Source of the DNA: Oculina patagonica
Taxonomy: Eukaryota
Reading direction: 5' to 3'
NCBI RefSeq assembly: GCF_052425735.1
Contig: NC_135758.1
Coordinates: 11,656,001 to 11,720,000, forward strand
DNA length: 64,000 nucleotides
The notes under the pieces are model-generated. The model did not search any database. It saw nothing but the letters and a program-made list of their open reading frames with translations, and was not told the origin of the DNA. Both the position numbers and the translations under genes were made by a program. Positions 5,356 through 48,600 of the stretch are shown here, piece by piece (within the stretch, counting starts at the first letter, position 1; the number at the start of each line of letters is the position of its first letter).

Positions 5356-6118
5356 GACTTGTGCTACCAGAGAAGTTCATCTGCGCTCTTTAACTTGGAT
5401 TTAGTCGAGGGATGGAAACTTTGGTCTTTTCGGCAAAGGAGCTTTTTTTCCATCTAACTTTAGGGAGCGCAAAAAAAGGCAAGTAAGCTCAAATGCCGCA
5501 TGTCGTCCAGCAAATCTCAGACGGTGGTGGGCTGACGGAGTCTTTTATCCGGGCAAGTAGTTTGTGTCTGGCAAATCACGGTTTTAAACTGAGTCTTGCT
5601 TATCGTTTATGGCGGACAAATTTGTAGATATGTTCGTACTCGTTCTTGGACAAATAAACTCGGTCTTACTTCTTCTTGACCTTGTGAAATTAAGAGAGCA
5701 CAATTCAACGTTAAGTTTTCATTTATACGTCAAAGTCTGCAGATAAACTCTGCCTAACTCTGGCTCTTCTCGTGTAAATGTAAATCTGCAATAACTGTTA
5801 CAATACTAACTCGTACTGTAAGCCCTGTTCCTACCCAACAAGTGCTTTATGATGTTCTTTCGTAACATGGTTCATAATGCAAAATTCTATTGTTTTTTTT
5901 TTTTTTTTAATCGACTGGATGTCGTTGACGCCGGAAAGCTATAAATCCAATAATAGATAGATTGCACTTAAAGTAATTAAACTAGATAGAGTACAGTACT
6001 ACAGGAGTATTGTTGTTAAGATAACTATCCAGTGTCCTCTGATATCATACGTAAAAACTTTAAGTCATCTCTTTTGCAAACTGAAAAGGGAACTAAGGCA
6101 GTTTTAAAATTCTGTTTT

Positions 6119-6156
6119 AAATAATAATAATAATAATAATAATAATAATTTAATAA
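6119..6156. repeat. (AAT)n microsatellite
   Basis: Direct tandem aataataat... run. Confidence 0.9.
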
Positions 6157-6272
6157 TTTATATAGCGCTTTTTAATCATTTTTTTTTTTTTAAACATCTT
6201 TTTAAACAGCTTTTTTTAAACATTTTTTATCATTGTATTTTGCATATAGCTTTAAGAAGAGTCCCCGCTGTC

Positions 6273-9200
6273 ATGAACTCAGTACAAGACATTTTAGAAG
6301 GCATCTGGATTGCTATAGTCGTTGCTACTTACCTTCTTAACACCTATCGCGGTCTGAAAGCCATCGAGTTGTGCAAGGAATGCTTGATTATCCTCAATAA
6401 CATAGCAAGCCGCAACGAAGCTGCACTTGATAAGAAATTGGTCGTCAAAGTACTTTTTAACCTGATATACACTACATTATTCCAGGCGTCATGTGTTATC
6501 CATGATTATACAAATGCAGTGCAATACGGCAGAAAAATACTTGAAATGCATCACAAATGTGGTGACATAGTGAAGGAGGCCGAGATGAACATAACTCTGG
6601 CAAACAGTTTGATCCATCAAAGAAAATATGAAGAGGCAAAAGAGCTTTATGAAAGAGTAATTAGCATAGCAATAGAAATTGGCGACAAAGAAGGAGAAGC
6701 CAGCGTCTATAAACAAATTGGATCTATGTTTTATTCCCTTTCTCAATTTGTCAAGGCTGAAGCTTATATCGAGAAAGCACTTGCAATCGCAGCAGTAATT
6801 AATGACAAAAAAGAAGAAGCCTGGTGTTATGGAAACCTGGGAGTTGTGTTACGATGTCTAGGTCAATACAGCAAGGCTAAAAACTACATCGAGAAAGCAC
6901 TTGCGATCAGGAAAGACATTGGTGGTAGAGAAGAACAAGCACAAGATTACGGGAACCTAGGAATGGTGTTTACATCACTTGCTCAGTACGATAAGGCTAA
7001 AGCATGTCTTCAGAAAGCGCTTGTGATCAGAAAATACACTGGTGATAGAAGAGGCGAAGCGACAGACTACGGAAATCTAGGAGACATATCTTTACGTCTT
7101 GGTGAATTTGGCGAGGCCAAAAAGTATCTCGAGAAGGCACTTATGATCAGCAAAGACGTTGGTTACAGGAACAACGAACCGAAAATTTATGGAAGTCTTG
7201 GAACTGTCTTTCAATCTATTGGCGAACATGTCACAGCTAAACGATATATTGAGAAAGCACTTGACATCGCAACAGAAATTGGTGACAGACATAGTGAAGC
7301 AACCAACTGCGGAAGGCTAGGAACAATATTTCTTAATCTTGGAGAATATTCAAAGGCCAATGAATACCTTGTAAAAGCACTTGAAATCAGTATAGAGATT
7401 GGCTACAGAAAAGAAGAAGCAACAGATTACGGAGACCTAGGACGTATGTTTAAATCCCTTGGTGAATATGCCAAGGCTAAGGAACATCTAGAGAAAGCCG
7501 TTGCGATAACAAAGGAAATTGGTGACAGACAAGGGGAGGCGGCAAATAACACAAACCTGGGAAACGTTTTGGTTTCAATTGGTGAATATAGCAAGGCTGA
7601 AGAATGCCATGAGAAAGCGCTTTCAATCAACAAAGAAATAGGTTGCAGAGATGGAGAAGCTCGATGTTACGGAAACATGGCAATTGTCTTTCAAACTCGT
7701 GGCGAGTATGTAAAGGCGCAAGATTATCTGGAGAAAGCAATAGCGATCCAAATTGAAATTGGTGACAGAGCAGGAGAAGCAGGTTGTTACGGAAACCTCG
7801 GAAATGTTTATAGATCTCTTGGTAAATGTGGCGAGGCCGAAAAATATCTCAAGAAAGCACTTGTGATCAGCGAAGAAATAGGAGACAGACAAGGACAAGC
7901 GTCATGTTATGAAAACCTGGGAACTTTCTTTCAAGATATTGATGAATATTCCAAGGCTGCAGAGTTCATCGAAAAAGCACTCGCGATCAGTAAAGAAATT
8001 GGTGACAGGCAAGGAGAGGCAGCAAGTTATGGAAACCTAGGAACTGTGTTTATATCTCTTGGTGAGTATGTCAGGGCAGAAGAATATCTGGAGAAATCAC
8101 TTGTGATGAGCAGAGAGATTGGTGACAAAAAAGGAGCATCAGACGATTATGGAAACCTTGGGAATCGTGTATCTATATCGTGGCGAATATATCAAGGCTG
8201 AAGAGTGTATCCAAAAAGCACTAGAAATCAGGGTACAAATTGGTGACAAAGAAGGAGAAGCAAGGGATTATACAAACCTGGGACAGTTTTTTATAGCGCT
8301 TGGAGAATATGTCAAAGCCGAAGATTATCTAAAGAAAGCACTTAAGATTCAAAAGGACATTGGTAACAGAAAAGGAGAAGCAGCCAGCTACGGAAGCCTA
8401 GGAAATATGTCTCAAATGCTTCAGAAAATATGACAAGGCTGTGGAATATCTCGAGGAAGCTCTTGCGATCGAAATAGAAATTGGTGACAAAAGAGGTGAA
8501 GCAGCAGATTATGGAAGCCTAGGAGATGTGTATAAATCATTGGGTGATTTTGACAAGGCAAAGAAAAATTACGAGAAAGCACTTGCTATCAAAGTAGAAA
8601 TTGGTGATAAGCAAGGAGAGGCCTCATGTCGTGGAAGACTTGGAACTGTGTTCATGACTTTTGGAGATCATGTCAAGGCAGAGGAATGTCTAGAGAAGGC
8701 GCTTGCATTTAGCACAGATATTGGGGATGGTGAAGAGGAGCTTTTTGATCTCTACAATTTGGCGTTGGTGAAATTAGTACAAGGCAAAGTCCACGAAGCG
8801 TTTCGTTATCTCCTTCCTAGTCTTAAAAAGTGCGAGGATTTGCGTGGCTTCCTTGAAGACAATGATCAGTATAAGATCTCTTTTGCAGACAAAAACGCTT
8901 TTCTCTACAAATCCTTAAGTGAGTGGTTTTGTCTCGAAGGATATCCTAATCAAGCTCTTTATGTCCAAGATCTGGCACGTGCCAGAGCTCTTGGAGACTT
9001 AATGTCAGCGCAGTAATGTGTTGGAAAACCGTTCTCGGCAAGTCCCCAGTCGTGGGTTGGAATTGAGAAGATAATGAAGAAAGAAAGAAATTCTACTTGT
9101 CTTTATATTTCAAATAATGATCAAAGTCTACGTTTTTGGATCCTCAAACCAGGCGGTGCCATACATTTCATCACAAGGATGGTAAATGGCAACAACTTTA

Positions 9201-10285
9201 ACCGGGGCCATGAATCAAGTTTGAACGATTTTTTAAATAAAATCTTCAGAGGTTTACGTTTAGTACCTGACAGGCATTGTGAAGATCGATCTCTAAATAG
9301 TATTCAACAGAGTGATACCGTATCTTTTGACGACAGCCTTCCAGTTTCTCGAATGGCAAATGATGGCAACGAAAACAAAGAACAGGAACTAAACCTATCT
9401 CTGTGTTATGAAATGTTTATCGCTCCCGTGGCTGACTTTCTTGACAGTCCTGAAATCGTCATTGTTCCTGATCAATCCTTGTATAAAGTTCCATTTGCAG
9501 CTTTAATCGATGAAAATGGGAAATATCTCTCCGAGTCTTTCAGGATCCGCAGCGTTCCTTCTTTGACGACTCTCAAGCTCATTCAAGACAGTCCAGCCGA
9601 CTATCACAGTCAAACAGGCGCATTGATAGTGGGTGATCCTGATGTTGGTTGGGTGCGTTACAAAGGAAAGAAAGAGAAAAAACGTAGATTACCCTGTGCA
9701 GGAAAGGAAGCCGCTATGATTGGACGTCTTCTGGGCGTCGAACCTCTGTTAGGACAGCAAGCAACTAAGCAGGCAGTACTCCATAGAATACCCTCAGTCA
9801 GTCTGATACATATTGCCGCACATGCTTACGCCGAAAAGGGTGAAATTGCACTGTCCCCTGTATCCTCTTCGAATTCTAGCAAAAATCCTGCTAAAGAGCC
9901 TGACTACCTGTTGACAATGTCTGACATTTCTCGTGTTCAACTGCGAGCTAAACTGGTTGTACTTAGCTGTTGTCACAGTGGGAAGGGACAACTTCGAGCT
10001 GAGGGAGTTGTTGGAATCGCTCGAGCATTCTTAGGATCTGGTGCACGCTCAGTGTTGGTGGCACTATGGGCCATAGAGGATACTGTGACGGAGCAGTTCA
10101 TGACTCGTTTCTACGAACACCTTATTCGCGGAGAAAGTGCAAGTGAATGTCTTCACGAGACCATGAAGTGGATGAGAAGTAACGGCTATTCTGACGTAAA
10201 ACATTGGGCACCTTTCATGCTAATTGGAGATAACGTGACATTTGAGTTTGGAAAGGACAGTAAGTTGTTAACAACACACTACTAA
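6273..10285 (+). pseudogene. TTC28-like TPR-CHAT gene copy 1, disrupted (19 x 40-aa TPR units + CHAT protease)
   Basis: ORFs 6240-8201, 8119-8433, 8441-9016 and 9074-10285 join into one protein collinear with the intact paralogue. Lesions: +1 G near 8160, +1 A near 8427, in-frame TAA at 9014-9016. Acceptor tatag near 6249, ATG 6273. CHAT motifs HIAAHA, VVLSCC, FLGSGARSVLVALW, WAPFMLIGD. Probable last exon 10824-10843 (donor 10260, giving ...GKDRARAEK*). Confidence 0.85.
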
Positions 10286-11839
10286 ATTTTCTATTGTTAA
10301 CAGAAAATTAGATCACAATCAAACCTAACTCTTTTTAATACGGCTTTAGTACGATTTCTTTGAACGTTATCGTTTATTCTTAGAAGCAAATAGGTCACTT
10401 AATTGGTCTCGTTGGGAAATATTACTCAATTTGGTCATTATAGCTTTAAAACTTCAGTAAGATAGCACAAGCACTTTTTTTTAACGGGCCTTCCCCTTGT
10501 TGACAAACTAAGTTAACAGCAGTTTTGAAAACGCAGTTGTGATAAAATACATATACTTATGTATAAGTTACATAAAAGAAGGGGAGCTACATAACCTATC
10601 CTCGAACCTAATATTCATTATTTATTCTTTTATTATTATTATTACAATGCTGTCAAAGTCGTATTGTTCTGCCTTCACAGAGACATCGCATGTAAGATCA
10701 AATTTAAGTCTTATGCATGAAATAAACCAAACTGAGAAGAGTTCCAGTAATTGACAACACTATTATTATGGTGTGTTTTAAGTGAGCTAGTAATAATTAA
10801 TATTAATTCCCATTGTTTTGTAGGAGCAAGGGCTGAGAAGTAATCTCTGGACCCTTCGAGGCCAACGTCAAGCACGTAATCAGTAAGGCAGGAAACGCCT
10901 GCAACGAAAACGAATGTATTTTTAACCGCGTAATATCAGTGCTTCAATAAGATGCTTTCTGTAAAACTTCGGTATGCAAAGATCATCTTTTTTAATCACG
11001 TAAAACACAAAATGAAATTAGGGGCAATGCAATCAAAATAAAGACTTGAACGGAATACATATAAAAGTTTTGGAACATTTTTGTATGTGCTCGAGAAGTT
11101 CTCTTAGCTCTATCTCCTCATTTGCCTTCTATTTGTTCAATGTAAATCAATGTTCCAGGCAAACATAGTGTAAAAACTGATCCGAGATGCAGAGACGGAG
11201 GCATAAAATGCTAGAAGACTGATTATTTTGTATGCTTACTGCATATATAGTTTTGTATTATATCTTAAAGTCAGAGAATAATGTGGTTTATAATTTGTAA
11301 CTTCATTGTAGTCTGAATGATCCAGAACTCCTATTTTGTAATTTTATTTCGTTTGTTAATGTACGTTTTTGATATTATAAGGTTTGTTGGACCTCGGGGT
11401 TCGTTTTGCGCCAATAAAGCAGTTTTTATACTACAGCATATATTAAGATACACTTTATTAGTTTTATGTCGTTATTTACCTTAGTTTTACAAAAAGCTCT
11501 CGAGAAATGACGACCAACAAAGTCCTAAGTGGCTGACGTAGTCTTTGTGCATTCATAGGAAACCCCTTCATAATAGGTTTTGTTACTGTACATTGGATAC
11601 TTGTCTGAAGTACAGTGTAAACTAGAACTAAAACGCAGTCTACATTATCATTGAGTGAAGTGCCTTAAGGATTAAAAGAATTTGTTCGGTTACTTTTCCG
11701 GAACTTTTCGGAGAACTTTCCTGGAAACTTGTCTGGAAATCTGACTAGCTAGGAAGAGGGTCCTGAGGGGTTTTTTCATTCATAAAGTTTTTTATTAGTT
11801 CCAAATCCCAGTCCCAGTGACCCAAGTGAGTGACAAACC

Positions 11840-12273
11840 CCATAAATTTCGGATAGGGGTGTGCCATGAAGGTTCTTAAACCCTGACCCTATTTAAGGAT
11901 AAACAAAGTGAAAATTGATAGGCTTTTTTTTAAGGCTCAAAACCGAAAAATGACACTCTATTCAAGGGGAGGAGACCGTGACGATCCAAATAACGGCTAA
12001 CCGCACACGGCAAAACAAAAATCCTTAGAAAATCGCTTAACTAATACTTGAAAGGATAGTACAGTTTTAGGATCCTCTTTTTCGTTTAGCTAGGCGTCTT
12101 TTAGCTGATATAATTTAGGTACCCTATTTAAGGATCACACAAAAAACACAATGCCAAAAGGAGCAAAAATGATACCCTATTTAAGGACAGAGAATTAACC
12201 TCAAAAACCATACCCTATCTTGCGGCACATACGTACATAGCCCATATATATATGGGAGTAACCCCCCCCCCGG
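11840..12273. mobile_element. Non-autonomous DNA element (CCCGGG-ended MITE)
   Basis: Subterminal repeat ACCCTATTTAAGGA at ~11887, 12121 and 12174; right end ...TGGGAGTAACCCCCCCCCCGGG; left end degenerate. Confidence 0.55.
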
Positions 12274-14583
12274 GGGGGAGGGGGTGACAAATTGTCATAC
12301 ATTGTCAACCCCGCTTTACGGACACTGTTTATCTGTGCACTGCCAATTTTCATTGTCGCGATTATTATATATTTGCGAGCTTCACCCTGGTCAAATAATG
12401 ACAGAATTGGACGATTTTATTACAAAGAGTAGCTTAATAGCGAGACTTGCAAAGGTTTTGTCGAATCTTCAGTCCGCCTGGTTGTGTCGCAAGCTTAAGG
12501 CTTCCTTCCAAAATAAAGTTACCGACTTTTTCATATGAGGTTGTAGAGTTTAAGAACGGTTACGGTCAGGGTTATACTTTCAGTTACAAAGGAAACTTTA
12601 TAGAAAACGTTCTGTTGCTGTTGAAATGCGTTTTATTTCTTGTATATAGTAAAGTTGTGACATTTTCAAATAATTCCACTGTTGAGTTTACTGAAGTTTA
12701 GTTTGAGTGTCTGACTAGGCTTTCGTAAAAACTATTAATTTTAGTCAGAGAGTTAAGAGTTAGCATTTGTTACAGTTACAGTACAATTAAACAACGTTTT
12801 GTTGTCGTAAAAACGTCCGCCTTGTCTTTGTGTCAATAAAACATGTACCCGTGTCTTTTTTCTGAGACCCCGCTTAATACGGCTTGTGACTTTCAGTTTC
12901 AAGCGCTGGTCCGTATCTTCGTCTTTGCTAACACGTACTCAGGCTCTAAACGGAGGCATGACAATAATAACTAGAAGAGAAGTTAAACATTTTTTTCGTT
13001 TCTGTACAAGCGGAACTTTTAAAGAAGGCAAGGATTTCTAGGGCAGCCTTATACAACGATTTTTTCGGTGGCTTTTATTACGGTTTTCAAAAGAAGTATT
13101 TCATAACTCTGTTTCATATAAGACATTTTGTTATTAAAAAAATAATTCGATACGATTGAAACAAATTAGACGGAGGCGGGGCAAACCAAAAATAAGCGGT
13201 GCCGGTTATTTCATCATGAGTTGACACAAGCGAGGGCTCGCAAGCACTGGAAACCGAAAATGATTGGTTGTCAGAAGCAACGTCATTCAGTCATAACAGT
13301 ACTTATAGTGGAGCAACACTTCTACATTGTTAGCTTACTTAAATAATCGTCCTAATTATTGAGGAAGGTTGATTTGGTATCTGTCCGACTTTGACATCCA
13401 AAAGAAAGGTGAGAGCAGCATATACATTGTAAAACCTTAACGTAATATTGTTAATTATAATATTGTTAAACCTTTACACAGTATCGGAGTTGTTTTTCGT
13501 TTAATTGACAACAACCTTTTCAAGTCTATGACACTGAGGCTAGTTTGAAACTAGCCTCAAAGAAAATCTTTGAAGCTGGATAAAGTTAAATATATGCTTT
13601 GATTGTACAACTGTTTGTCTTCTTCATTAGAGAGTGACCACTTGACCAATGTTCTTTGTTTCGCGCTGTTCTTCCTTACAAAAACTGAACATTGAGTGAC
13701 AAAGTTTAGATGACAAAATGACTTCCTTGTTTGCGCTCATAAATAGGTGTGAGATAGATACGAATTCTGGTGCAGTTTGTTTCGGAGGACAGAAGTCCTT
13801 TTATTTCGAGAAAAAAAAAGAAGAAAATTAGTTTTTCTCGTCGTCTTGCGTAATATTAGCAGAGTTTCCAACTTCGCTTTCACGGCTGATGTCTGTTTCG
13901 GCGGTAACGCCATCGTGATTTTTCTTCGGCTTCTTGGCACGTAGTTTTGGTTTTGTTGTCGGACGTGATCTTTTCCTTTCCCGAGATTCATGCTTCCCGG
14001 AAGCTACAGCTCGGGAAGTTTTTTTTTTTTTTTTTTTTTTTTTTTTGTAGAAAATTCGAGTTTTTTTTTTCATTGAGCGCTGCAGGTACAGACATTTTTC
14101 AAGAAAAAAATAATCTGTCGCACCACCAAATCGGGTTTGCTAGTTGCTCCTCAGGTGGTTTTCTAGTCACGTGTTCAGTTTCTCAAGTGATCCAAAGTAA
14201 TGATTGGTGAGGTAGAATAGTCCAATTTTGGCCCAGAAATCGCCATCATTGGGACACTTTCAAATTTATCGACAGAAAACTGTTTCTTCCTCTACTAGAA
14301 GGTATTTTTAGGGATGTGGCGAGACTCTTCAAAATAAAACAATTTAAAATTAAGGAAGAGTTTTTGACGATAACAGCAATTTTAATTTTGTAGTCACTCT
14401 TTCGCCGGCGTAACTCAAACTGCGGTTTTATTAATCGTCGTTTAATCTACAGAGAATTGACCAGGGCTCTTGTTTTTTTAATTCCTTTGTGAATTGCCAT
14501 TATTGTAGTCCTTTACTCTCGAAAAGTTCCAAGCATTTCAATGCAAATGGCTTGACTGCTCTGTATTGTTCCCTCGTCTCCAT

Positions 14584-14796
14584 AGAGGCCCTGTTAGGTT
14601 TTTAGGGATAATGGATAACTCGGAAAATGATTTTAGGGATAAGGTTTGAATGTTTAAATAATTACAGGGATAAAGTATCACAACTCAATTTTAGGCATAA
14701 CGAAAATCAAAATAATAAGGTCAACACCTTTAGTAATTTTATGGATAAGTAGAAATGCCCTGGATGGGATAACGTTACCCCCATAACAGGGCCTCT
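14584..14796. mobile_element. MITE with 13-bp TIRs
   Basis: AGAGGCCCTGTTA (14584) and TAACAGGGCCTCT (ending 14796); internal TTTAGGGATAA-like repeats. Confidence 0.75.
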
Positions 14797-14861
14797 TCAT
14801 AAGAAGAATTGATTTTATTATTGCTATTAATTTTTCTTAAAGGGAAAAGACAGCACGGGCC

Positions 14862-17800
14862 ATGGAGAGCAAAGAAGAAGTTATACAAGCCATATTCATC
14901 GGCTTTGTTGTTGCCACATTGCTCTACAACACCTGTCGTGTTGAGAAAGCTATTGAGCTATGGAAGGAATGCTTGCTCCTCCTCGATCGTAGGGTATTGA
15001 TGGAGAAAAATTCATTTGTGATATCCGTTTCCAAAGGCATATATGCAAAACTGTTCCAGGTATACTATCAAATTCATGATTACACTAATGCACTGCAATA
15101 TGGCCAAATACTTCTAATTAAAAACATGGAGTGTGGCGAAAGAGCTAAAGAAGGTACACTTAGTATAAAACTAGCAAAAATTTATCAGCATCAAAGTAAA
15201 TACATGGAAGCAATAGAATTGTACGAGAAAGCAATCTCAATCATGGTGGAAATGAAAGACCGTGATGGAGAAGCATCATGTTATGGAAACCTAGGAACTT
15301 TGTTTATATCTTTGCGGGAGTATGACAAGGCCAAAGACTATCTTGAGAAAGCACTTGTTATTAGAGTAGAATTGGATGACAGGGAAGGGGAAGTGATTAA
15401 CTGCGGAAACCTAGGAGCTGTCCATGTATCTCTTGGTAAATATAGAAAGGCCAAAGAATATTTCGAGAGAGCTCTTGCGATCAGCATACAAACTGGCGAC
15501 AGAAAAGGCGAAACATCATATTATGGGCACTTAGGAAATGTCAGCGTCTCTCTTGGAGAGTATTCCGAGGCCAAAGAATATTTCGAAAGGGCACATGTGA
15601 CCAGCGTGGAAACGGGAGACAAGGCTAGTGAAGCATCAATTTGTAGAAACATGGGTGCTTTGCTGAAGTCTTGCGGTGAATATGACGAGGCCAAAACATT
15701 TTTTGACAAAGCACTAGCGATCAACATCGAAGTTGGTGACAGAAAAGGTGAAGCTTTGTGTTACGAAAAGCTAGGAGCTATGTATTACTCCCTTGATGTT
15801 CGTGAAAAGGCTGTAGTATGTTTTGAGGAAGCACTTACGATCCAGATCGAAACTGGTGATATTTTTGGTCAATCGACAGTTTACGTTAACCTTGGACATG
15901 TGTTTATTTCCCTTGGTGAGTTCGTCAAGGCTCGGGAATGTCTTCAGAAATCGCTTGCAATCGGAATAGAGGCTGGTGACAGAAAAGTTTTAGCTTCATC
16001 TTACAGGCAGTTAGGAAACGTCTGTCAGGCTATTGGAGAGCACGCCAAGGCCACAGAATATCTAGAGAAAGAACTTGCGATTAGAATAGAAACGGCAGAC
16101 AGAGAAGGAGAAGCGATATGTTACGGAAACCTGGGAAAGGTGTTTGAATTCCTTTGTGAATATGGCAAGGCGGAAGAATATAGCAGAAAGGAACTTGCGG
16201 TCAGTATGGAAATTGGTTGCAAGCAAGGAGAAGCGTCTTCATTTGAAAACCTTGGAGCCATTTTTCGAAATCTCGGTGAATATGTCAAGGCCAAAAGCTA
16301 TTTTGAGAAAGCACTTGCAATTAGAATAGAAATTAGCGACAGAGAAGGAGAAGCGGCAGATTACGTGCACCTGGCAAATGTGTACCGCCTGCTTAGTGAC
16401 TATGCAAAGGCTTATGAATACCTTGAGAAAGCACTTGAGATCAGAAGACGAATTCACGACAAGAAAGGTCAGGCGACAGTTTATGTGAATCTTGGAATAG
16501 TGTTTATATGCCTTGGTGATTATGCAAAGGCTAATGAATATCTTGACAGAGCCCTTCCTATCGGAATAGAAACTGGTGACAGAAGGCTTGAAGCTGTAGT
16601 TTACGAAAATCTGGGAAAAACCTTTAGTTTTCTATGTGAAAATGACAAAGCTAAAGAATACTCCCAGAAAGCACTTGCAATCACAAAAGAAATTGGTGAC
16701 ATTCGAGGAGAAGCGTTTTCGTTGGGTAACCTAGGAAGTGTTTTCCAAACCCTTGGAGACAACGCAAAGGCTAAAGAATATTTCGAAAAAGCACTATCCA
16801 TCATGAAAGAGATTGGCGATACGGCAGGAGAAGCGGCAATTTACGGAAACCTTGGTCTTATGTTCCAAGCACTTGGTGAATTTGGAAAGGCTCCTGAATA
16901 CCTGAATAAAGCCATCGCCATTAAGACAAAAATTGGAGACAAAAGCGGATTAGCGACAGACTACGGAGTCCTAGGCACAATTTTGGCATTCCTGGGCGAA
17001 TATGACAAGGCTAAAGAGCATATCGAGGAAGCACTTTCGATCAGCAAAGCAATTGGTGACAAGAAAGGAAAAGCGTCATCCTATGGTCACCTAGCTAATC
17101 TGTACTTAGCACTTGGCAAATATCCCAAAGCCTCAAAATATATTACGAAGGCACATGCGATCAGTGAAGAAATTGGTGACAAAGCAGGTGAGGCGACAGC
17201 GTATGAAATCTTCGGAACATTGTTTTATTCTATTGGTGACAACGATAAGGCTGAAGAATTCTTTGACAAAGCACTTTCAATCAGCATAGAAATTGGTAGC
17301 AAAAGAGGACAAGCAAAAGCCTACGGGGAGCTTGGAAATTTCTTTGTCTGTCTCGGTGAATATTTCAAGGCTAGAAAATATCTTGAAAAGGCACTTGCAA
17401 TAAGTAGAGATGTAGGAGACCGGGAAAGAGCATTTTTATGCTATTGTAACCTTTCATTGGTGAAATTATTCGAAGGTAATATTAACGAAGCGGTTATGCA
17501 TCTCATTGCAAGTATCAAACAGTATGAGGATCTCAGAGGCTCCCTGGGTGACAATGACCAATTGAAGATCTCTTCCTCGGACCTGCGCGTTTTCCCCTAC
17601 AAGATGCTGACCAGTTTGTTGTGTTGGACCGAGAATCCTGATAAAGCTCTTTATGTTGAAGAGCTTGGACGTGCTAGAGCTCTGGCAGACCTAATGTCAG
17701 CTCAATATAATCTGGAAAAACCCAAACCGACTAATCCGCAATCAATCGCCAGTATTAAAAATACAGTGAAAAAGGAAGGTAAATGTACTTTTTTATACAT

Positions 17801-18941
17801 CGCATATTCCTCTCGAAGCTTGTTCATGTGGATTCTTAAAACAAGCGGCGTCCATCGTTTAAGGGAAATGGAGTTACATGAAAACCCAGTCCAGGACGGG
17901 CTGGCAACAGGTTTTGGCGATATTTTCGAAAAAGGCTTTAGGAAATTTGTTATTTTACCGGACCAGCTTTCCGAAGATCGATCTTTAAACACTTTTCAAG
18001 GTCAACAAAGGGCACCTCTGAAAGAAAGCCCGGCAGCTCCTCGCATTGTAGAGGAAAATGAAGAAACGAAAGAACTCAAACCGAGTCTTTCGTTGTGTTA
18101 CAAATTAATAATAGCTCCTGTGGCTGACTTACTTCAAGACCGTGACATCATCATTATTCCTGATCGTTTCTTGTTTAAAGTTCCATTTGCCGCGTTAAGT
18201 GACGAAAGAGGAAAATATTTGTCAGAGACCTTTAGGATCCGCATCGTTCCTTCTTTGACGACTCTCAAGCTTATTCAAGACAGTCCATCAGACTATCACA
18301 GTCAGACTGGCGCATTGATAGTGGGTGATCCTAACGTTGGTCGGGTGCGTTACAAGGGACGTCTTAAAAACATTTCACGACTGCCTTGCGCTGAAAAGGA
18401 AGCAGAGATGATTGGGCGGTTGCTTGGTGTCGAGCCCTTGCTTGCGGAACACGCAACTAAGCAAGCAGTACTTCAAAGAATAAATTCTGTGAGTCTAATA
18501 CATTTTGCCGCACATGGTAATGCCGAAAGGGGCGAAATTGCACTTTCACCTGTATGCCCTCTCAACAGAACACCTCAAGAAGAAGATTACCTGTTGACAA
18601 TGTCCGATATTTCACGAGTTCAACTACGAGCTAAACTTGTAGTACTTAGCTGTTGTCACAGCGGAAATGGAAAGATTAGAGCCGAGGGAGTTGTTGGAAT
18701 CGCTCGAGCGTTTCTTGGATCCGGTGCACGCTCAGTGTTGGTGGCACTGTGGGCCTTAGAAGACAGTGCAACAGAGCAGTTCATGAATCGTTTCTACGAG
18801 CAACTTGTTCAAGGGCAGGGTGCCAGCGAATCTCTTCACGTGGCCATGAAGTGGATGAGAGCTAACGGCTATTCTGACGTGAGACAGTGGGCACCTTTTA
18901 TGTTGATTGGAGATAACGTGACTTTCAATTTCGGAAAGTAA
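14862..18941 (+). CDS. TTC28-like TPR-CHAT protein copy 2, intact (1359 aa; 20 x 40-aa TPR units + caspase-like CHAT protease)
   Basis: Uninterrupted ORF with repeats of consensus GD(R/K)xGEAxxYxNLGxxFxxLGEYxKAxEYxEKALxI. CHAT domain has putative catalytic His (HFAAHG) and Cys (VVLSCCHSG) and ends WAPFMLIGD. Acceptor ttaaag at ~14842 implies an upstream exon. Confidence 0.95.
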   Translation: MESKEEVIQAIFIGFVVATLLYNTCRVEKAIELWKECLLLLDRRVLMEKNSFVISVSKGIYAKLFQVYYQIHDYTNALQYGQILLIKNMECGERAKEGTLSIKLAKIYQHQSKYMEAIELYEKAISIMVEMKDRDGEASCYGNLGTLFISLREYDKAKDYLEKALVIRVELDDREGEVINCGNLGAVHVSLGKYRKAKEYFERALAISIQTGDRKGETSYYGHLGNVSVSLGEYSEAKEYFERAHVTSVETGDKASEASICRNMGALLKSCGEYDEAKTFFDKALAINIEVGDRKGEALCYEKLGAMYYSLDVREKAVVCFEEALTIQIETGDIFGQSTVYVNLGHVFISLGEFVKARECLQKSLAIGIEAGDRKVLASSYRQLGNVCQAIGEHAKATEYLEKELAIRIETADREGEAICYGNLGKVFEFLCEYGKAEEYSRKELAVSMEIGCKQGEASSFENLGAIFRNLGEYVKAKSYFEKALAIRIEISDREGEAADYVHLANVYRLLSDYAKAYEYLEKALEIRRRIHDKKGQATVYVNLGIVFICLGDYAKANEYLDRALPIGIETGDRRLEAVVYENLGKTFSFLCENDKAKEYSQKALAITKEIGDIRGEAFSLGNLGSVFQTLGDNAKAKEYFEKALSIMKEIGDTAGEAAIYGNLGLMFQALGEFGKAPEYLNKAIAIKTKIGDKSGLATDYGVLGTILAFLGEYDKAKEHIEEALSISKAIGDKKGKASSYGHLANLYLALGKYPKASKYITKAHAISEEIGDKAGEATAYEIFGTLFYSIGDNDKAEEFFDKALSISIEIGSKRGQAKAYGELGNFFVCLGEYFKARKYLEKALAISRDVGDRERAFLCYCNLSLVKLFEGNINEAVMHLIASIKQYEDLRGSLGDNDQLKISSSDLRVFPYKMLTSLLCWTENPDKALYVEELGRARALADLMSAQYNLEKPKPTNPQSIASIKNTVKKEGKCTFLYIAYSSRSLFMWILKTSGVHRLREMELHENPVQDGLATGFGDIFEKGFRKFVILPDQLSEDRSLNTFQGQQRAPLKESPAAPRIVEENEETKELKPSLSLCYKLIIAPVADLLQDRDIIIIPDRFLFKVPFAALSDERGKYLSETFRIRIVPSLTTLKLIQDSPSDYHSQTGALIVGDPNVGRVRYKGRLKNISRLPCAEKEAEMIGRLLGVEPLLAEHATKQAVLQRINSVSLIHFAAHGNAERGEIALSPVCPLNRTPQEEDYLLTMSDISRVQLRAKLVVLSCCHSGNGKIRAEGVVGIARAFLGSGARSVLVALWALEDSATEQFMNRFYEQLVQGQGASESLHVAMKWMRANGYSDVRQWAPFMLIGDNVTFNFGK

Positions 18942-20195
18942 ATTTAGAAGTTTCACCCACAAATGGTTTTTGTCAATTTTTAACTTATAAACTAGTAGTA
19001 ATCAGAGATTAGGGGAGTGCGTTCGACCTATAGGTAAAATTGACCCAAGGTAGGCAGGCATTGGCAAAAGACGATATGGTTTGCCTACTAGTAGTATGCC
19101 TTATACCAAAGTTAGTTAATATGCATATACCTCACTAAACGCGAGGAGGATAAGTGTGAGAAAGATTGTGTGACGAGCCAAAAGAACATAGAATGAATGA
19201 AATATTATGTACACAAAAATAATTATTTATTTCACTTGACTTGTTATCGTTTGGCACTAAACGAGATTTAAACTTCCACAAACTTGTGGAAATAGTTTCA
19301 CTTCGACTTTACGCATGTAACATTCAATGTACAACGATTTCCCCGTCAAAACTTCTAGTGTTTCTAGGAACAACGATATATCACGAATTCAAAGAAGTGA
19401 TAAAACAATTTTGATCCGTATTATACCCACTCTCGATGCATGTAACTCTTACAATTCAATTGTAGTTTTGTGCAACGTATAATTGCAGGACAACACGCTG
19501 GTTTAGCTACGAACGAACTCCGTACGAGACTACGCATCAACTTACTCGATTTTCACTCGTTTTACGACGTTCAGTGGCTGAAGACAACTCTGCTACCTTG
19601 GATGATAACCCTCTTATGTTCTCCATGACATTTTCGGCAAAATTACAATTTTGGCCACACGTTTTTAGCCCTTTTTCTCAAGCGAAATAATGTTTTTGAG
19701 CTCAGTTTGGGACGCCATCTTGTTTTGCATGAAATCGAGGCCATCTGTGGCTACCAGTTTCCCGGCCGAGATTTGCCCCTGCAAAAATTAAGCGGGGGAG
19801 GCTAGTCGTGTGTCTATACATATGCGCGCGCAATGCGGCTCGATTCGTTCCGCATAACAGTACACAGGCATACCAACTCAAAAGACACAGGACACAAAAT
19901 CAAAATTAGGCTTGCGCTCTCCTTCGTCGAACGCAATTATCATTTTTCCTTCCATAAGGTTCCATACGAAGTATTATATATCAAAATACGGTAATAGATG
20001 TTTCCACTTGAAAACACTAGTGTTCATCTGAAAAGTGTAAAAATGTGCCTTTTTAAATATTTTTCCCTCGTCAATAAAATTAAAGATACATTTTAAAGGC
20101 TCTGATGATGGCGATGAAGTAACCAAACCTCTCTCCGCCCTCGTCCAACATGGAAGACAATTTTATTGTGAATAAAATTTTCGTGTTTAAATAAA

Positions 20196-20233
<38 letters not shown>
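20196..20233. repeat. (GAT)n microsatellite
   Basis: Direct tandem gatgatgat... run. Confidence 0.9.
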
Positions 20234-20234
<1 letters not shown>

Positions 20235-20254
20235 AGGGAGTTAGAAAGCTAACA

Positions 20255-20608
20255 TAAATTCCGTGAGTCTGATGCATAATATTTGCCCCACATGGTAATG
20301 CAGAAAGATGATATGCAGACGTATTTTAGCGAGCGAACGCATTTTGATAGGGCGAGCGCCAACTTGGATTCGTACTCTGCAGAGAATTGATGAGAGAAGA
20401 AAACCCGTCCCAGGGAGGAGCAAGGCTAAATGTCGCTTCCAAACCTCTCTCCGCCCTCGTCCAACATGGCGGCGAATCTTCTCGATCGCTAACTCGCGCG
20501 TGCCCACGGAAAACGCCTGCACTGCAGGCTACCTCTCCTCAGAACTCCTGAAGTGGAAGACTACACTGTACCTGTTGACAACGTATGACATTTCACAGGT
20601 TCAACTAC
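20255..20608 (+). pseudogene. Third CHAT-domain relic, split by a ~220-bp repeat
   Basis: ataaattccgtgagtctgatgcat...cacatggtaatgcagaaag matches 18480-18529 (INSVSLIH...AHGNAER). After an insert (~20308-20531), cctctc...gaagactac...tacctgttgacaa...gacatttcacaggttcaactac matches 18558-18627 (EDYLLTMSDISRVQL). Confidence 0.75.
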
Positions 20609-40951: not shown

Positions 40952-42787
40952 ATCACCTTGTTAATCGTCTAGAAATTAAGACGTCTGTTAAAATCCTTGG
41001 AATTCATTTCACGTACGATTTATGCGCCAAACGAAAGTTAAATTGTGACGATCTGATTAAATCGATCAAAGAAAAGTTAAGAATCTGGAGGTGGAGGGAC
41101 CTTACAGTTATTGATAGGATTCAAATTGTTAAAACTTTCATTATTCCAATTATCCTATATCGTGCAAGCATGATATGTCTAGACAAAGAATTCTTAAACA
41201 AGGCAAATAGCATTATATTCAATTTTATCTAGAAAGGAAAAGATAAAGTCAAACGTTTAGCGCTTGTTAGCGATGTCGAAGATGGCGGACTCAAAGCTCC
41301 TCATCTCGAATCCATTATTAGAACCCAAAGAATTCTTGTTTGCAAGAGACTTGCAAACGAACAGACCAGCAACTGGAAAACTATTTTATTGCATTACCTT
41401 AAACCTGTTGGTGGCATATTTATCCTCTGTTGCGACTTTGATGTGAAAACTTTGCCTATCAAGCTTCCACTCTTTTATGAAGAATGTCTAAAATACTTTT
41501 CAGAATGCTCTGTATCGAACAAAGCCGTACAGAACCTATCAGCTGCTGATATTTTAAAAACTGTCCTTTGGAATAATAAAGCTATTTGCATCAATGGCAA
41601 GTCTGTATACAATCACAAGCTAGCCAGCATCGGTATACGTAAAATAGGAGATTTAATAATCGCTGAAAATAATGAACTTATCACGAAACATAAGTTACGT
41701 GAATTAAATATCTCCCCATTAGATGCCTTTAGACTCACTTGTGTCATCGAAGCCATTCCAACCGAATGGCGAAAATGTCTAAAAACGTGTCAATATATTA
41801 CTGCGAAGCCATTCAACCTACAAGACCAGATGCAATTACATTTAAACGGACAAGATGTGCAGATCTGTAAAGCTGTATCAAAAATCATTTACCAGGAATT
41901 ACGTGATAGGATCATCACTCCACCTACAGCGCAATTCAAATATAATGATCTATTCGAAAACGATGTGTTGGACTGGAAGCAGATATATAGCTTACCGCAT
42001 CGAGTTGCCCTGGACACAAAACTGCGCGAATTTCAATATAAAATTTTAAACAGATGTCTCGCAACGAATGCTTTTCTTTGCAAAATCGGCATTTTGTCAT
42101 CTCCAGCTTGTTCTTTATGTGGAGAAGCGGACGAATCCCTCGAACACTTGTTTGTAACTTGCCATTATTCTGAAAATTTTTGGGGGGAGGTTATTAAATG
42201 GATTAGCAGCCTTGACATTCAAATAGTCTCTCTTTGTTGTAAAGATATAATATTTGGGATAACAGTCTCGAAAGAAGAATTGTTTGTAAATCACATTTTA
42301 TTAATCGCGAAAAAATATATTTATTCTTGCAGATGTGATAAGCTTAAACCTTCTTTTTTGGTGTTCCTTGCTAAAGTTAAGACTATCTACAAACTAGAAA
42401 TGATGGTAGCTAAATCTGGCAACAAATGGCCAACTCATTTAAAAAAGTGGGGCAAGTTTATAAAAGTGCATCAAACTGATTGTTAATTATTATCGCAGAG
42501 CGTTTTTTTTTTATTATTTTTTTTTTATACTTGCAATTCATCACTTGCAATTCAATATACTTTATATAATTCAATTATTTTTCACAGAGCTAGTATACCT
42601 GTAACTCCCAGGTGGTACAGTGTGTGTGTGTTTGCGTGAGTGTTTTTATTTATTTATTTATTTATTTATTTTTTGGATATTTGTGTGTTCGAATTGTAAT
42701 ATAAATATGTATGTTATCTTTTGTGTGCTGTAAAAAAACCTTTGAGTATGAAATAAATATCATTAAAATACAAAAAAAAAAGAAAAA
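40952..42787 (+). mobile_element. 5'-truncated L1/Tx1-clade LINE (ORF2 C-terminus, zf-RVT), flanked by a 104-bp TSD
   Basis: Reads VKILGIHF...WRWRDLTVIDRIQIVKTFIIP...FI*KGKDKVKR...DGGL...KLREFQYKILNRCLATN...CSLCGEADESLEHLFVTC...KKW; 3' UTR with AATAAA (~42752) and A-rich tail; direct repeats 40848-40951 and 42788-42891. Confidence 0.92.
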
Positions 42788-45679: not shown

Positions 45680-48600
45680 TAACTTGCATTGTGGCTCCAA
45701 ATGAACGTTTGTGGAATGAAACACATCAAGTATGAATTGAAATTAATAACTTTTTGTCACCTAAAACAGTTCTATTGAAGCTTGTTGATTGTATCTGGCG
45801 ACTACGCTTCCTCAGTAAGCAACCTGGTCCAACCTGTAAGTGATGTTTTTGGACGTAAAGTTATAAGTTGTCTTTGCATGATCGATTCGTGTTGTCAGAA
45901 TTCAATTTGTCGTTTTAACACGTTTTATATTTATTAAATGGCTGAATTTCGATTCTTCTTCTTCCCCTAGAGACACTACGGGAGCGAATTGAACTTACAT
46001 TATTGGGACAAGTGCGACCAGTGAAACCGTCAATATTTACCTTGTGGAGTCTCGCACACCGCGAGTATTCTGGTCATCTTCAACACAATTCAAAAGTAGA
46101 ATCCTTAAAGAAGAGTAAAACTCAAAAGATAAGAGTTTAACTATTAGAGAAGTGTGTTTGCACTGATATTAAGTATCTCATCTTTCTTTTAGTGCATTTA
46201 TACTGCATTTAGTTGAAATCCTCTAAAAAAATATTTCCTCCCTAAACAAAATTCTAATACCCTGAAAAAAAGGGAAGATTACACTTTTTAGTGTAATAGA
46301 TACTGATTTCAGTGTTAAAGGAAATGTCCTTACACTGATTCTAAGTGTTAAAATATTCTTTAAGTGAACTTAAAAAAAAGTAATTTACTTATCCCTAAAG
46401 TAAGTTTTTTTCTCTTTTAATAATAAAGCTTTCACACCCTTAAACCTGGAAAGCACACTCTTTTAAGAGTGCATATTACAAGATAGTGAACTGTGATTTT
46501 AAGTTAATTATATTTAGTTTTGCCATAACACAACCTTAACTGCAATAATAAAAAATCCGTACAACAACTTTTGTTTTCTAATTAACATAACAAAGCAATG
46601 GTTTGGTGGGAATTGTATGTATGACTTTTGAATAAATTATATTACTTGTTAATCTTAATTCAAGTAACTCAACATCATAACAACAATATATGGCCTTGCC
46701 ATACAACAGGTTACTAGTCTTTGAGGTCAGAAATGTCATATTTTAACTTGATGTAATTATTGCCATTAAAAGAATAGAGAGGCAATGGGGTATATGTAAC
46801 AAGCATATCTGGTGTCACTGACACAATCCCAGATGCTTGGGGCCGTACTTCATATGCTCTCAGTGACTCATTAAATCCAACTGTCTGCAGGAATATTACA
46901 TCAAACACGACAAGAGAAATGTTAAGTTCCAGTATACCACACAGTTTTCCAAACATTGGCATTTCTTCATCATCAAACTTCACAGCCAGATAACATTTAT
47001 CCACATGATACTTAGTGCCATGAAGAATAATCCATTTGAACGATTCAACATTGTTTATGCTGTCCTTTTCAATTGAGAGGGATGACGAGATCCTTTGTTT
47101 GGTTGCGGACAGATCATCTCCTTGAAGTTGCCGCACAGGTCCATACTCATTTTCCTTAAAGAGTGAACTACGACTGATGGCAGCTAGCTTCTGGTGATGG
47201 CGGCATAATGATAGACATAAGTTCTTAAAATTCATAACTTTCTTAAGCTGTTTGAAATACTTGTGTTTGGCCTCAAATCGCATAGCCCACAAATTAATAA
47301 GAGGGCCCAGAAGGAGAATAATTTTGGGAAAATGGACTAGGTAATGCTGTTTTGGGGTAAACGGTTGGTCTGGGAATAGCTCCTTAAAGAGTCTTAAGTA
47401 GTCTTTAACTGCTTCTTTAAGTCTTGCAATGGTTTCTAGGCTAATGACTGAAGCAAAAGAAATATCAGTTATTTCAGCCAATAAAGTGTACAACTCCCAG
47501 TGAACATCATTAAGGTTGACATTTTTCCCAACTACAAAAGGAAAAATTTGAAAGAGTAAATGTGCTTTGGCTGCATCTTGGTTAAGACATGAAGAACCAC
47601 GGAGATCTTGCTGCCTTATATTGTTAGGTTTGTCTTTCTCTTCCATGTAGCCATATAAGAAATTCTTGATTCCATTGTTAATTTCAACAAGAGTTGTCTG
47701 TTTAGTGCTTATAAAGTGTTTTATCAAAGCTTGCAAAGTAAGAGGGATGACTCCCTCCAACAAAACATGCATCACATCAGGTGGAGTTTGTTCAAATATA
47801 TCAAAATATGGAAATTCACACAGGATGCTTTTGCGATTTATGCCATAGGCAGTCTTATAATTGTCCTTTAAGGCCTGGGGTGCATTATTGATTACACTGC
47901 ATTGCTGAAGATGTTGTTCAAGTGTCAGTGGATCAAAATCTTCTTCATAAAATCCATTTTGCATGGCATCATAGTCTGCATGACAGAACCTGCACTTTCG
48001 AAATGCTCCTCCTACTGACTCCTTTAAACCAATGGCTTGATGTGCTGCAGGATTATCTGCCACATAGGCAACCAAAGCTGCATTGATGCCAATCAGGTTT
48101 CCACTCTTCAAATGAATGGGATGTCCTCCTGCTGTACTGAGCTTTTGCATATCCTCCAATAACGGTTGAAGAATTGTGTCAAATCCATATGTTGCCACAT
48201 CTGAAGTTGTCACCACTGCATACAAGTTGATTGCATTTAAAACACTCCGATATATTTTAGGTAAGTTACCTATTATGTAATAAAACATAAGTAGCTTGAA
48301 TTGTTTCACCCTTGTACCAATAGCATTACACAGTTCAATCTCGTCACTATAAAGGATAATTTCAAGTGTGCTGATACCACTGCTTGCAAACAAAGGGTGG
48401 CTCGACAGGACTGCACCATCCTGGATGTATTCAAATTTACCATGAGCATGCTTGCACTTTGCTTCCAACAATGTTTTTCTCAATGGCTCATTCGATAACA
48501 TAGCCTCTTAATGTTGGATGAGAGGAATAAAACAAAAGGAGTGTGTTTTAAACAATGGTCGCCTTCCTCTCCTTCGACCTTGTGATGAAAGTGTTGTTCC

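Follow-up and report, generated by a model that had tools for sequence, protein, structure and literature searches.

The 64,000-nucleotide stretch analyzed here (the window) comes from the coral Oculina patagonica (RefSeq assembly GCF_052425735.1, contig NC_135758.1, forward-strand positions 11,656,001 to 11,720,000), and positions below are counted from its first letter. On the plus strand, it carries three elements related to genes that fuse an array of tetratricopeptide repeats (TPRs) to a CHAT domain. We hold with considerable confidence that these elements make up a small and old cluster belonging to the scleractinian "TTC28-like" TPR-CHAT family (chromosome-scale contig C1 of O. patagonica, around 11.66 Mb), comprising one intact gene, one pseudogene and one CHAT fragment, and that a sensor-protease mechanism is what such proteins may be built for.

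One intact gene, one pseudogene and a CHAT fragment

The second of the three elements, hereafter copy 2, is the intact one. Its features are as follows.

14862-18941, plus strand: copy 2, intact TPR-CHAT gene in a single open reading frame (ORF)
15150-17429, plus strand: TPR array of copy 2, 19 units of 40 amino acids
17430-17549, plus strand: degenerate 20th TPR unit, following the 19-unit array
17550-18086, plus strand: linker; in the model, helices, then a small beta-sheet subdomain and a loop predicted to be disordered
18087-18914, plus strand: CHAT domain, residues 1076-1351
18513-18515, plus strand: codon of the putative catalytic His1218 (AAHG)
18654-18656, plus strand: codon of the putative catalytic Cys1265 (LSCC; Cys1264 stands just before it)

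The ORF of copy 2 is unbroken over 1359 codons. Pfam recognizes TPR_12 (PF13424) in 14 stretches, with an E value of 2e-154, and a CHAT domain (PF12770; 2.2e-57, 195 bits against a cut-off of 24) that covers profile positions 4-289 of 289 and ends 8 residues before the stop codon. When the protein is written in rows of 40 residues, residues 97-856 fall into 19 TPR units of an exact 40-residue period without any indel, with the unit consensus EAxxYxNLGxxFxxLGEYxKAxEYxEKALAIxxExGDxxG. The register also shows in the autocorrelation of the protein, whose self-identity is 0.42 at lags of 40 and 80 residues and about 0.12 at other lags. The CHAT domain has both of its motifs, HFAAHG (residue 1214) and LSCCH (residue 1262). 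Furthermore, an independent DNA run labeled "coral metagenome" contains most of the locus at single-copy depth, including most of this ORF, and its main contigs are listed without differences. An exact look-up of the copy 2 protein in public assemblies gave no match, in a search from which records of its own genome were possibly excluded.

Upstream of copy 2 lies copy 1, a pseudogene with the following features.

6273-10285, plus strand: copy 1, TPR-CHAT pseudogene with 18 clean TPR units and 1 degenerate unit, a linker and a CHAT domain
About 8160-8165, plus strand: first frameshift, a +1 shift at GGGAATC in TPR unit 14 that leads from frame 3 into frame 1
About 8401-8406, plus strand: second frameshift, a +1 shift at GGAAAT in TPR unit 16 that leads from frame 1 into frame 2
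9014-9016, plus strand: in-frame TAA (LMSAQ-stop), a Tyr codon in copy 2 (LMSAQY)
9407-10231, plus strand: CHAT domain of copy 1

Copy 1 starts with an ATG at 6273 and is collinear with copy 2, which matches it by tblastn in three successive frames (frame 3 over 6273-8225, frame 1 over 8110-8427 and frame 2 over 8336-10255). Pfam finds TPR_12 (PF13424) in its pieces at 2e-113 and CHAT at 1.3e-58 (199 bits against the cut-off of 24; residues 112-386 of the ORF at 9074-10285). The frameshifts and the stop codon were located by three-frame translation, the frameshifts also from their sequence context. LSCCH is kept (nucleotide 9962), whereas the His motif reads HIAAHA, although HG is found there in all of 120 homologues. 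Both the TAA codon and the change from HG to HA argue for a real pseudogene rather than an assembly error. Of note, Tandem Repeats Finder reports a period of 241 nucleotides at 7756-8343, the length of two TPR units, with 73% matches; this period, together with the equal self-identity of copy 2 at 80 and 40 residues, hints at a two-unit super-repeat. An (AAT)13 tract occupies 6120-6157, just upstream of the copy 1 start.

The third element, the relic, consists of two pieces.

20253-20308, plus strand: relic piece 1, degenerate His-motif region of CHAT, reading APHGNAER
20543-20608, plus strand: relic piece 2, degenerate DYLLTMSDISxVQL region of CHAT, reading LYLLTTYDISQVQL

These are collinear, lie on the same strand and add up to about 120 nucleotides of CHAT-like DNA; they are about 235 nucleotides apart, compared with 30 in the model. 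Their significance was established only at the DNA level, by a profile of the family's CHAT domains searched with nhmmer (E values of 5.1e-5 and 1.2e-4) and by BLASTN, in which the relic was 78-87% identical to CHAT DNA from copy 1 and from eight further paralogues. Piece 1 is 78-80% identical to the CHAT DNA of five paralogues, and piece 2 is 87% identical over 38 nucleotides to copy 1 (9905-9942) and to the paralogue loci L011-L013. A hidden Markov model of the family's C termini run against six-frame pieces gave E values of 1.5-2.6 for the relic, which are not significant. Neither a TPR array nor a Cys motif survives; what remains is part of a CHAT domain and does not amount to a third TPR-CHAT gene. 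The unrelated sequence of about 235 nucleotides between its pieces (20309-20542) is probably an insertion into the dead fragment, and a perfect (GAT)12.7 microsatellite lies immediately upstream, at 20196-20233.

Copies 1 and 2 share 43% identity in the N terminus, 41% in the TPR array and 77% in the CHAT domain, and we found no homology between their flanks. In a tree of CHAT domains, both fall into an unresolved polytomy with Orbicella and Stylophora sequences and are not resolved as sisters. A recent tandem duplication of copies 1 and 2 was considered and rejected on these three results. Since, in addition, the nearest paralogue of copy 2 in the whole genome is only 56-62% identical to it, the local pair is old and the locus is a place of decay rather than of recent birth, copy 1 and the relic being the death side of a birth-and-death turnover.

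An earlier note on this DNA, made from the letters alone, had delimited three same-strand elements at 6273-20608, and these coordinates proved exact. It had also read copy 2 as an array of 19 to 20 exact 40-residue TPRs fused to a CHAT domain with intact His and Cys motifs, in agreement with the 19 clean units and one degenerate unit, the Pfam match and the motifs described above. Its series of disrupted, intact and relic gene copies stands for copies 1 and 2, whereas the relic turned out to be a CHAT fragment. The birth-and-death duplication that it postulated is borne out by the pseudogene and the fragment, but not by any sign of recent birth at this locus.

An expanded coral gene family

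Copy 2 belongs to a large family. A six-frame search of the whole genome with a CHAT model gave 416 first-look candidates, of which at least 135 were scored as CHAT domains, each with more than 198 bits; most of these matches lie in long open frames of about 300-2100 amino acids, and most contain no stop codon. Dense TPR-CHAT arrays are present on C1, C3, C8, C14 and other contigs, and in a maximum-likelihood tree of 59 CHAT domains, each chromosomal array forms its own well-supported clade, which points to local tandem expansion. Within the subfamily of copy 2, the number of TPR units ranges from 10 to 25. The best named relatives of copy 2 are annotated as "tetratricopeptide repeat protein 28-like" or as uncharacterized proteins of O. 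patagonica, Orbicella faveolata and Stylophora pistillata, and annotated homologues in these corals are 56-69% identical to it. The O. patagonica protein LOC144654306 aligns with the genome analyzed, at C1:8138642, with 100% identity along its entire length.

Two further groups of loci are worth recording. At C6:16708357-16747805, four CHAT matches with identical scores lie in 854-residue open frames spaced by about 12.5-13.7 kb, a pattern suggesting that a single TPR-CHAT gene was quadrupled in tandem very recently. The arrays L028-L054 (C3 at 20.2-20.7 Mb, C3 at 16.8-17.0 Mb and C8 at 22.2-23.7 Mb) form a deeply separated subfamily (branch length 0.68), whose open frames, unlike those of copy 2's subfamily, begin inside the TPR array with no obvious start codon; these genes may have an upstream exon.

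The TPR_12 array, the single C-terminal CHAT domain and the many tandem paralogues of copy 2 are those of the TTC28-like family described in scleractinians (Acropora, Montipora and Pocillopora), in which an N-terminal TPR array of variable length precedes a single C-terminal CHAT domain and hundreds of tandem copies lie in transposon-rich regions. We see no essential difference from that family: copy 2 comes from a coral of the robust clade and represents an old, now isolated lineage. For two Acropora species, Takeuchi and colleagues counted 276 and 304 TPR-CHAT genes, against a range of 6-362 among corals, 15 such genes in Nematostella and 1-2 in most metazoans; they reported tandem duplication in transposon-rich, nonsyntenic regions with copy-number differences between haplotypes, and listed TPR-CHAT among the families likely involved in innate immunity (DNA Res 2025, PMC12314368). 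In Montipora, the TTC28-like expansion was found beside a retained canonical TTC28 (PMC9145168), and the Pocillopora genome paper described coral-diversified TPR proteins with CHAT domains, for which apoptotic signaling was suggested (PMC6208414). TTC28-like TPRs are also among the modules fused to TRADD-N in conflict-type architectures of cnidarians and other animals (Kaur et al., PMC8195603). That this family is expanded, and that it may have an immune or apoptotic significance, has thus been published before (DNA Res 2025; BMC Ecol Evol 2022; Sci Rep 2018); its genes carry the annotation "TTC28-like." Our literature search turned up neither functional work on a cnidarian TPR-CHAT protein nor a paper that connects CHAT domains with gasdermin in cnidarians.

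Predicted protease fold and variation of the TPR arm

In an alignment of 120 homologues, His1218 is invariant and Cys1265 is conserved in 119. Alignment of a linker-plus-CHAT profile with the solved CHAT domain of DdvA (8rot) puts His1218 on the HG motif and Cys1265 on the Cys of LAAC. We modeled the linker and the CHAT domain with AlphaFold2 from a 63-sequence alignment (mean predicted local distance difference test score [pLDDT] of 72; predicted template modeling score of 0.58), and each of the two putative catalytic residues stands in the model just after a beta-strand, with a pLDDT of 82-93 around the His strand. Conservation, the DdvA alignment and the model together place the His and the Cys each at the end of neighboring beta-strands of a caspase fold, the arrangement of clan CD. 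The CHAT domain of copy 2 is a clan-CD (caspase/separase-fold) domain with a family-invariant His1218/Cys1265 dyad and is a candidate protease. In the linker, the model has helices followed by strands at model residues 116-144 and a stretch with pLDDT below 50 at residues 163-213. We infer that this part may be a separase-like pseudo-protease subdomain; structural matches to TTC28 and to separase also extend over the linker.

The Foldseek matches of this model in the PDB are Csx29 (top match, 7e-10), DdvA, separase (7e-8), SAVED-CHAT, gingipain and MALT1, and those in Swiss-Prot are TTC28 (about 1e-30, 25% identity), separases (2e-8) and bacterial Roc-COR-CHAT proteases. Vertebrate TTC28 (TPRBK; Q96AY4 and Q80XJ3), the best structural match in Swiss-Prot, also combines a TPR array with a CHAT domain. 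It is nevertheless a different protein, of about 2450-2481 residues, present in 1-2 copies in most metazoans (PMC12314368) and linked to mitosis and cytokinesis, with an internal CHAT domain, whereas copy 2 has 1359 residues in an uninterrupted ORF, a terminal CHAT domain and hundreds of paralogues. We do not regard copy 2 as a canonical TTC28 orthologue.

Csx29, the protease of the bacterial type III-E Craspase, shares with copy 2 the combination of TPRs and CHAT, the caspase/separase fold and the His-Cys dyad, and it sets a precedent for a TPR-CHAT protease that is switched by binding. However, the two are only 10-14% identical, and Csx29, with its few TPRs, depends for activation on Cas7-11 and target RNA, which have no relevance at a eukaryotic locus. 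The genome is that of an animal, and no Cas-like ORF was found among the window ORFs scanned, which speaks against the association with Cas7-11/gRAMP and a CRISPR array that marks Craspase; the likeness to Csx29 suggests a possible working mode, not family membership. Separase, too, places helical repeats before a C-terminal active domain of caspase fold, but it is a single-copy protein regulated by securin and Cdk1 and is 11-14% identical. The active CHAT subdomain of bacterial Roc-COR-CHAT proteases (Runella, P0DV49) superposes on that of copy 2 with a root mean square deviation of 5.3-5.4 over about 225-235 residues (E values of 1e-5 to 2e-4), and in these proteins a repeat or sensor module is likewise fused to a protease, the sensor being Roc-COR there and TPR in the coral genes. 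Swiss-Prot names these matches only "Roc-COR-CHAT protease" or "probable protease"; we take them to be linked to bacterial gasdermins. No gasdermin was found among the 9 window ORFs scanned, in which multi-exon genes were not modeled.

If the TPR arm serves as a sensor, its variation should say so, and we approached this by defining ten variable unit positions from copy 2 alone, by the entropy across its units, and then computing the ratio of nonsynonymous to synonymous substitution rates (dN/dS, Nei-Gojobori) in other genes. The test drew on 49 paralogue loci whose flanks were long enough to extract the ORFs (L011-L059) and on two independent young pairs among them with 83-84% amino acid identity, one on C1 at 8.09-8.14 Mb and one on C14 at 17.65-17.68 Mb. 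Measured against their own dS, the variable positions of the young pairs have dN/dS values of 2.1 and 2.6 (binomial p of 0.04 and 0.03); measured against the gene-wide dS, the values are 1.1 and 2.0 (Fisher p of 0.26 and 2e-4). In the same pairs, the TPR framework positions have values of 0.23-0.65, and the CHAT domain, at 0.09-0.22, is under strong constraint. The nonsynonymous differences per site (pN) of the young pairs peak at unit positions 3, 7, 10, 13 and 14, which form one stripe on TPR helix A. In TPR proteins, this face of helix A lines the ligand groove. The pattern is suggestive of a diversifying sensor joined to a conserved protease, though the signal is thin.

Among the other proposals of the earlier note, that of a lineage-expanded family instead of a single-copy TTC28 is confirmed by the genome-wide count of CHAT domains in tandem arrays. 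A variable repeat sensor region coupled to a conserved protease is consistent with the range of unit numbers and with the lower identity of copies 1 and 2 in TPR than in CHAT, and Csx29 of Craspase, separase and the bacterial CHAT proteases presumed to be gasdermin linked were all recovered by Foldseek as structural relatives.

Candidate sensor-protease function and its alternatives

An immune sensor-protease mechanism is, by analogy with bacterial CHAT defense proteases, a reasonable hypothesis for this family. Under this mechanism, the concave TPR groove would bind a protein or peptide partner that differs among paralogues. Partner binding would control the CHAT protease, either by release of autoinhibition or by recruitment of the substrate, and the protease would then cleave a substrate to signal or to kill. 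The family could in this way provide sensor-proteases for immunity, allorecognition or symbiont control. In its most specific form, which we advance tentatively and as one possibility, coral TPR-CHAT proteins would be ligand-gated caspase-fold proteases whose paralogue grooves (positions 3, 7, 10, 13 and 14) recognize different non-self or danger peptides or proteins, binding switching on the cleavage of a death or signaling substrate. They would then be an NTPase-free eukaryotic counterpart of the bacterial CHAT defense proteases and would add to the NLRs a second large repertoire of intracellular receptors.

Several observations weigh against this proposal. The Pfam scan of copy 2 returned only TPR-type and CHAT families, with no adaptor or death-fold domain, NTPase or signal peptide; in particular, the central NACHT or NB-ARC NTPase of NLR/STAND receptors is absent from that scan. 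In the model, pLDDT falls to 53-59 around and after Cys1265, in a low-confidence loop. The dN/dS signal stems from two pairs with 6-8 synonymous differences and from preselected sites, it may be distorted by gene conversion, and older pairs have values of about 0.5-0.6. Copy 2 has no close paralogue, and the relatives returned for it, named and unnamed proteins alike, do not exceed about 71% identity; the dN/dS values therefore pertain to other members of the family. The functional data on animal TPR-CHAT proteins concern human TTC28 only and tie it to mitosis and cytokinesis, not to immunity (cited in PMC12314368). Finally, a search of public runs listed no holder of the sequence that is recorded as RNA, and from three further runs, guessed to be of RNA, nothing but short and patchy contigs matched copy 2, one of them a perfect match of 221 nucleotides and two of them 97-98% identical and from another species label. 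The 97-98% identical set has 12 differences (7 replacement and 5 silent), too few to judge constraint, and paralogues are the most likely source of the high depth at the conserved CHAT motifs.

A variant of the sensor-protease proposal is that the diversifying proteins serve colony allorecognition (fusion or rejection) or the control of dinoflagellate or microbial symbionts, and not pathogen defense. Corals are colonial and symbiotic, and both roles have been raised for expanded coral immune-type families (PMC12314368); the evolutionary signature would be identical to that of pathogen sensing, from which the present sequence data cannot separate these roles. We consider this variant, taken as the exclusive function, unlikely.

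The setting of the cluster bears on a second alternative. Three ORFs of mobile elements lie downstream in the window, as identified by Pfam.

41389-42486, plus strand: zf-RVT ORF, tail of a reverse transcriptase of the long interspersed nuclear element type
46714-48501, minus strand: Plavaka/DUF4218-like transposase ORF
51576-52394, plus strand: tyrosine recombinase ORF (DUF3504 and phage integrase)

With these ORFs, the TPR-CHAT cluster lies in transposon-rich DNA, as it does in Acropora. Directly 3' of copy 2, at 18900-19800, the depth of DNA contigs rises to 5,700-15,000, compared with 48.8 for the single-copy gene body (run X3), which indicates a repeat of several hundred copies. This segment was also considered as a flank shared by the family and rejected, having no match to the flanks of the other TPR-CHAT loci compared; it is a separate repeat. 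Elsewhere in the window, a run of 28 T residues occupies 14019-14046, and a 208-residue ORF at 27887-28513 (plus strand) encodes an HSP20/alpha-crystallin domain (Pfam, 3.6e-12); small heat shock proteins are another family reported to be expanded in corals (PMC12314368).

Such surroundings, with two of the three local copies dead, mobile-element ORFs nearby and a high-copy repeat abutting copy 2, are what would be expected if the family were largely a by-product of unstable, transposon-rich regions, in which tandem duplication through nonallelic recombination, together with hitch-hiking, raises the copy number, with little or no adaptive function for most copies, so that the locus would be mostly decay. 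Hitch-hiking of unrelated genes in expanding regions of this kind has indeed been described (PMC12314368). We nevertheless judge this explanation quite improbable. Copy 2 keeps its 1359-codon ORF and a perfect 40-residue register though its nearest paralogue is so distant, the CHAT domain has a low dN/dS and an invariant dyad, and most of the 135 scored copies sit in long open frames with a CHAT match free of stops; the intact copy 2, the low dN/dS and the stop-free copies argue for purifying selection on many copies.

Last, it is very unlikely that the family simply continues the housekeeping work of TTC28, its members acting as scaffolds or proteases in mitosis, cytokinesis or another cell-biological process, its copies differing by tissue or stage rather than by ligand and forming no sensor system: TTC28 is by far the closest Swiss-Prot relative over linker and CHAT, and a cell-cycle role was proposed by homology for the Montipora genes, but hundreds of copies, a variable repeat number, pseudogenes, haplotype copy-number variation and replacements along one helix face are atypical of such a role, acroporids retain a separate canonical TTC28 (PMC9145168), and the CHAT domain is C-terminal in copy 2 but internal in TTC28, where the match spans residues 1117-1718 of about 2450-2481.

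The locus itself, an ordinary cluster of the family and in part decayed, tells us nothing that the published work does not. Still, copy 2 lends itself well to expression and mutagenesis, being a gene with a single ORF and no close paralogue to cross-react. Its source, O. patagonica, is a classical model of Vibrio bleaching. If the TPR-CHAT genes do form a working sensor-protease repertoire, they would represent a new class of animal innate receptors and would link the cell-death proteases of animals to bacterial CHAT defense, with a bearing on coral disease, bleaching and allorecognition.

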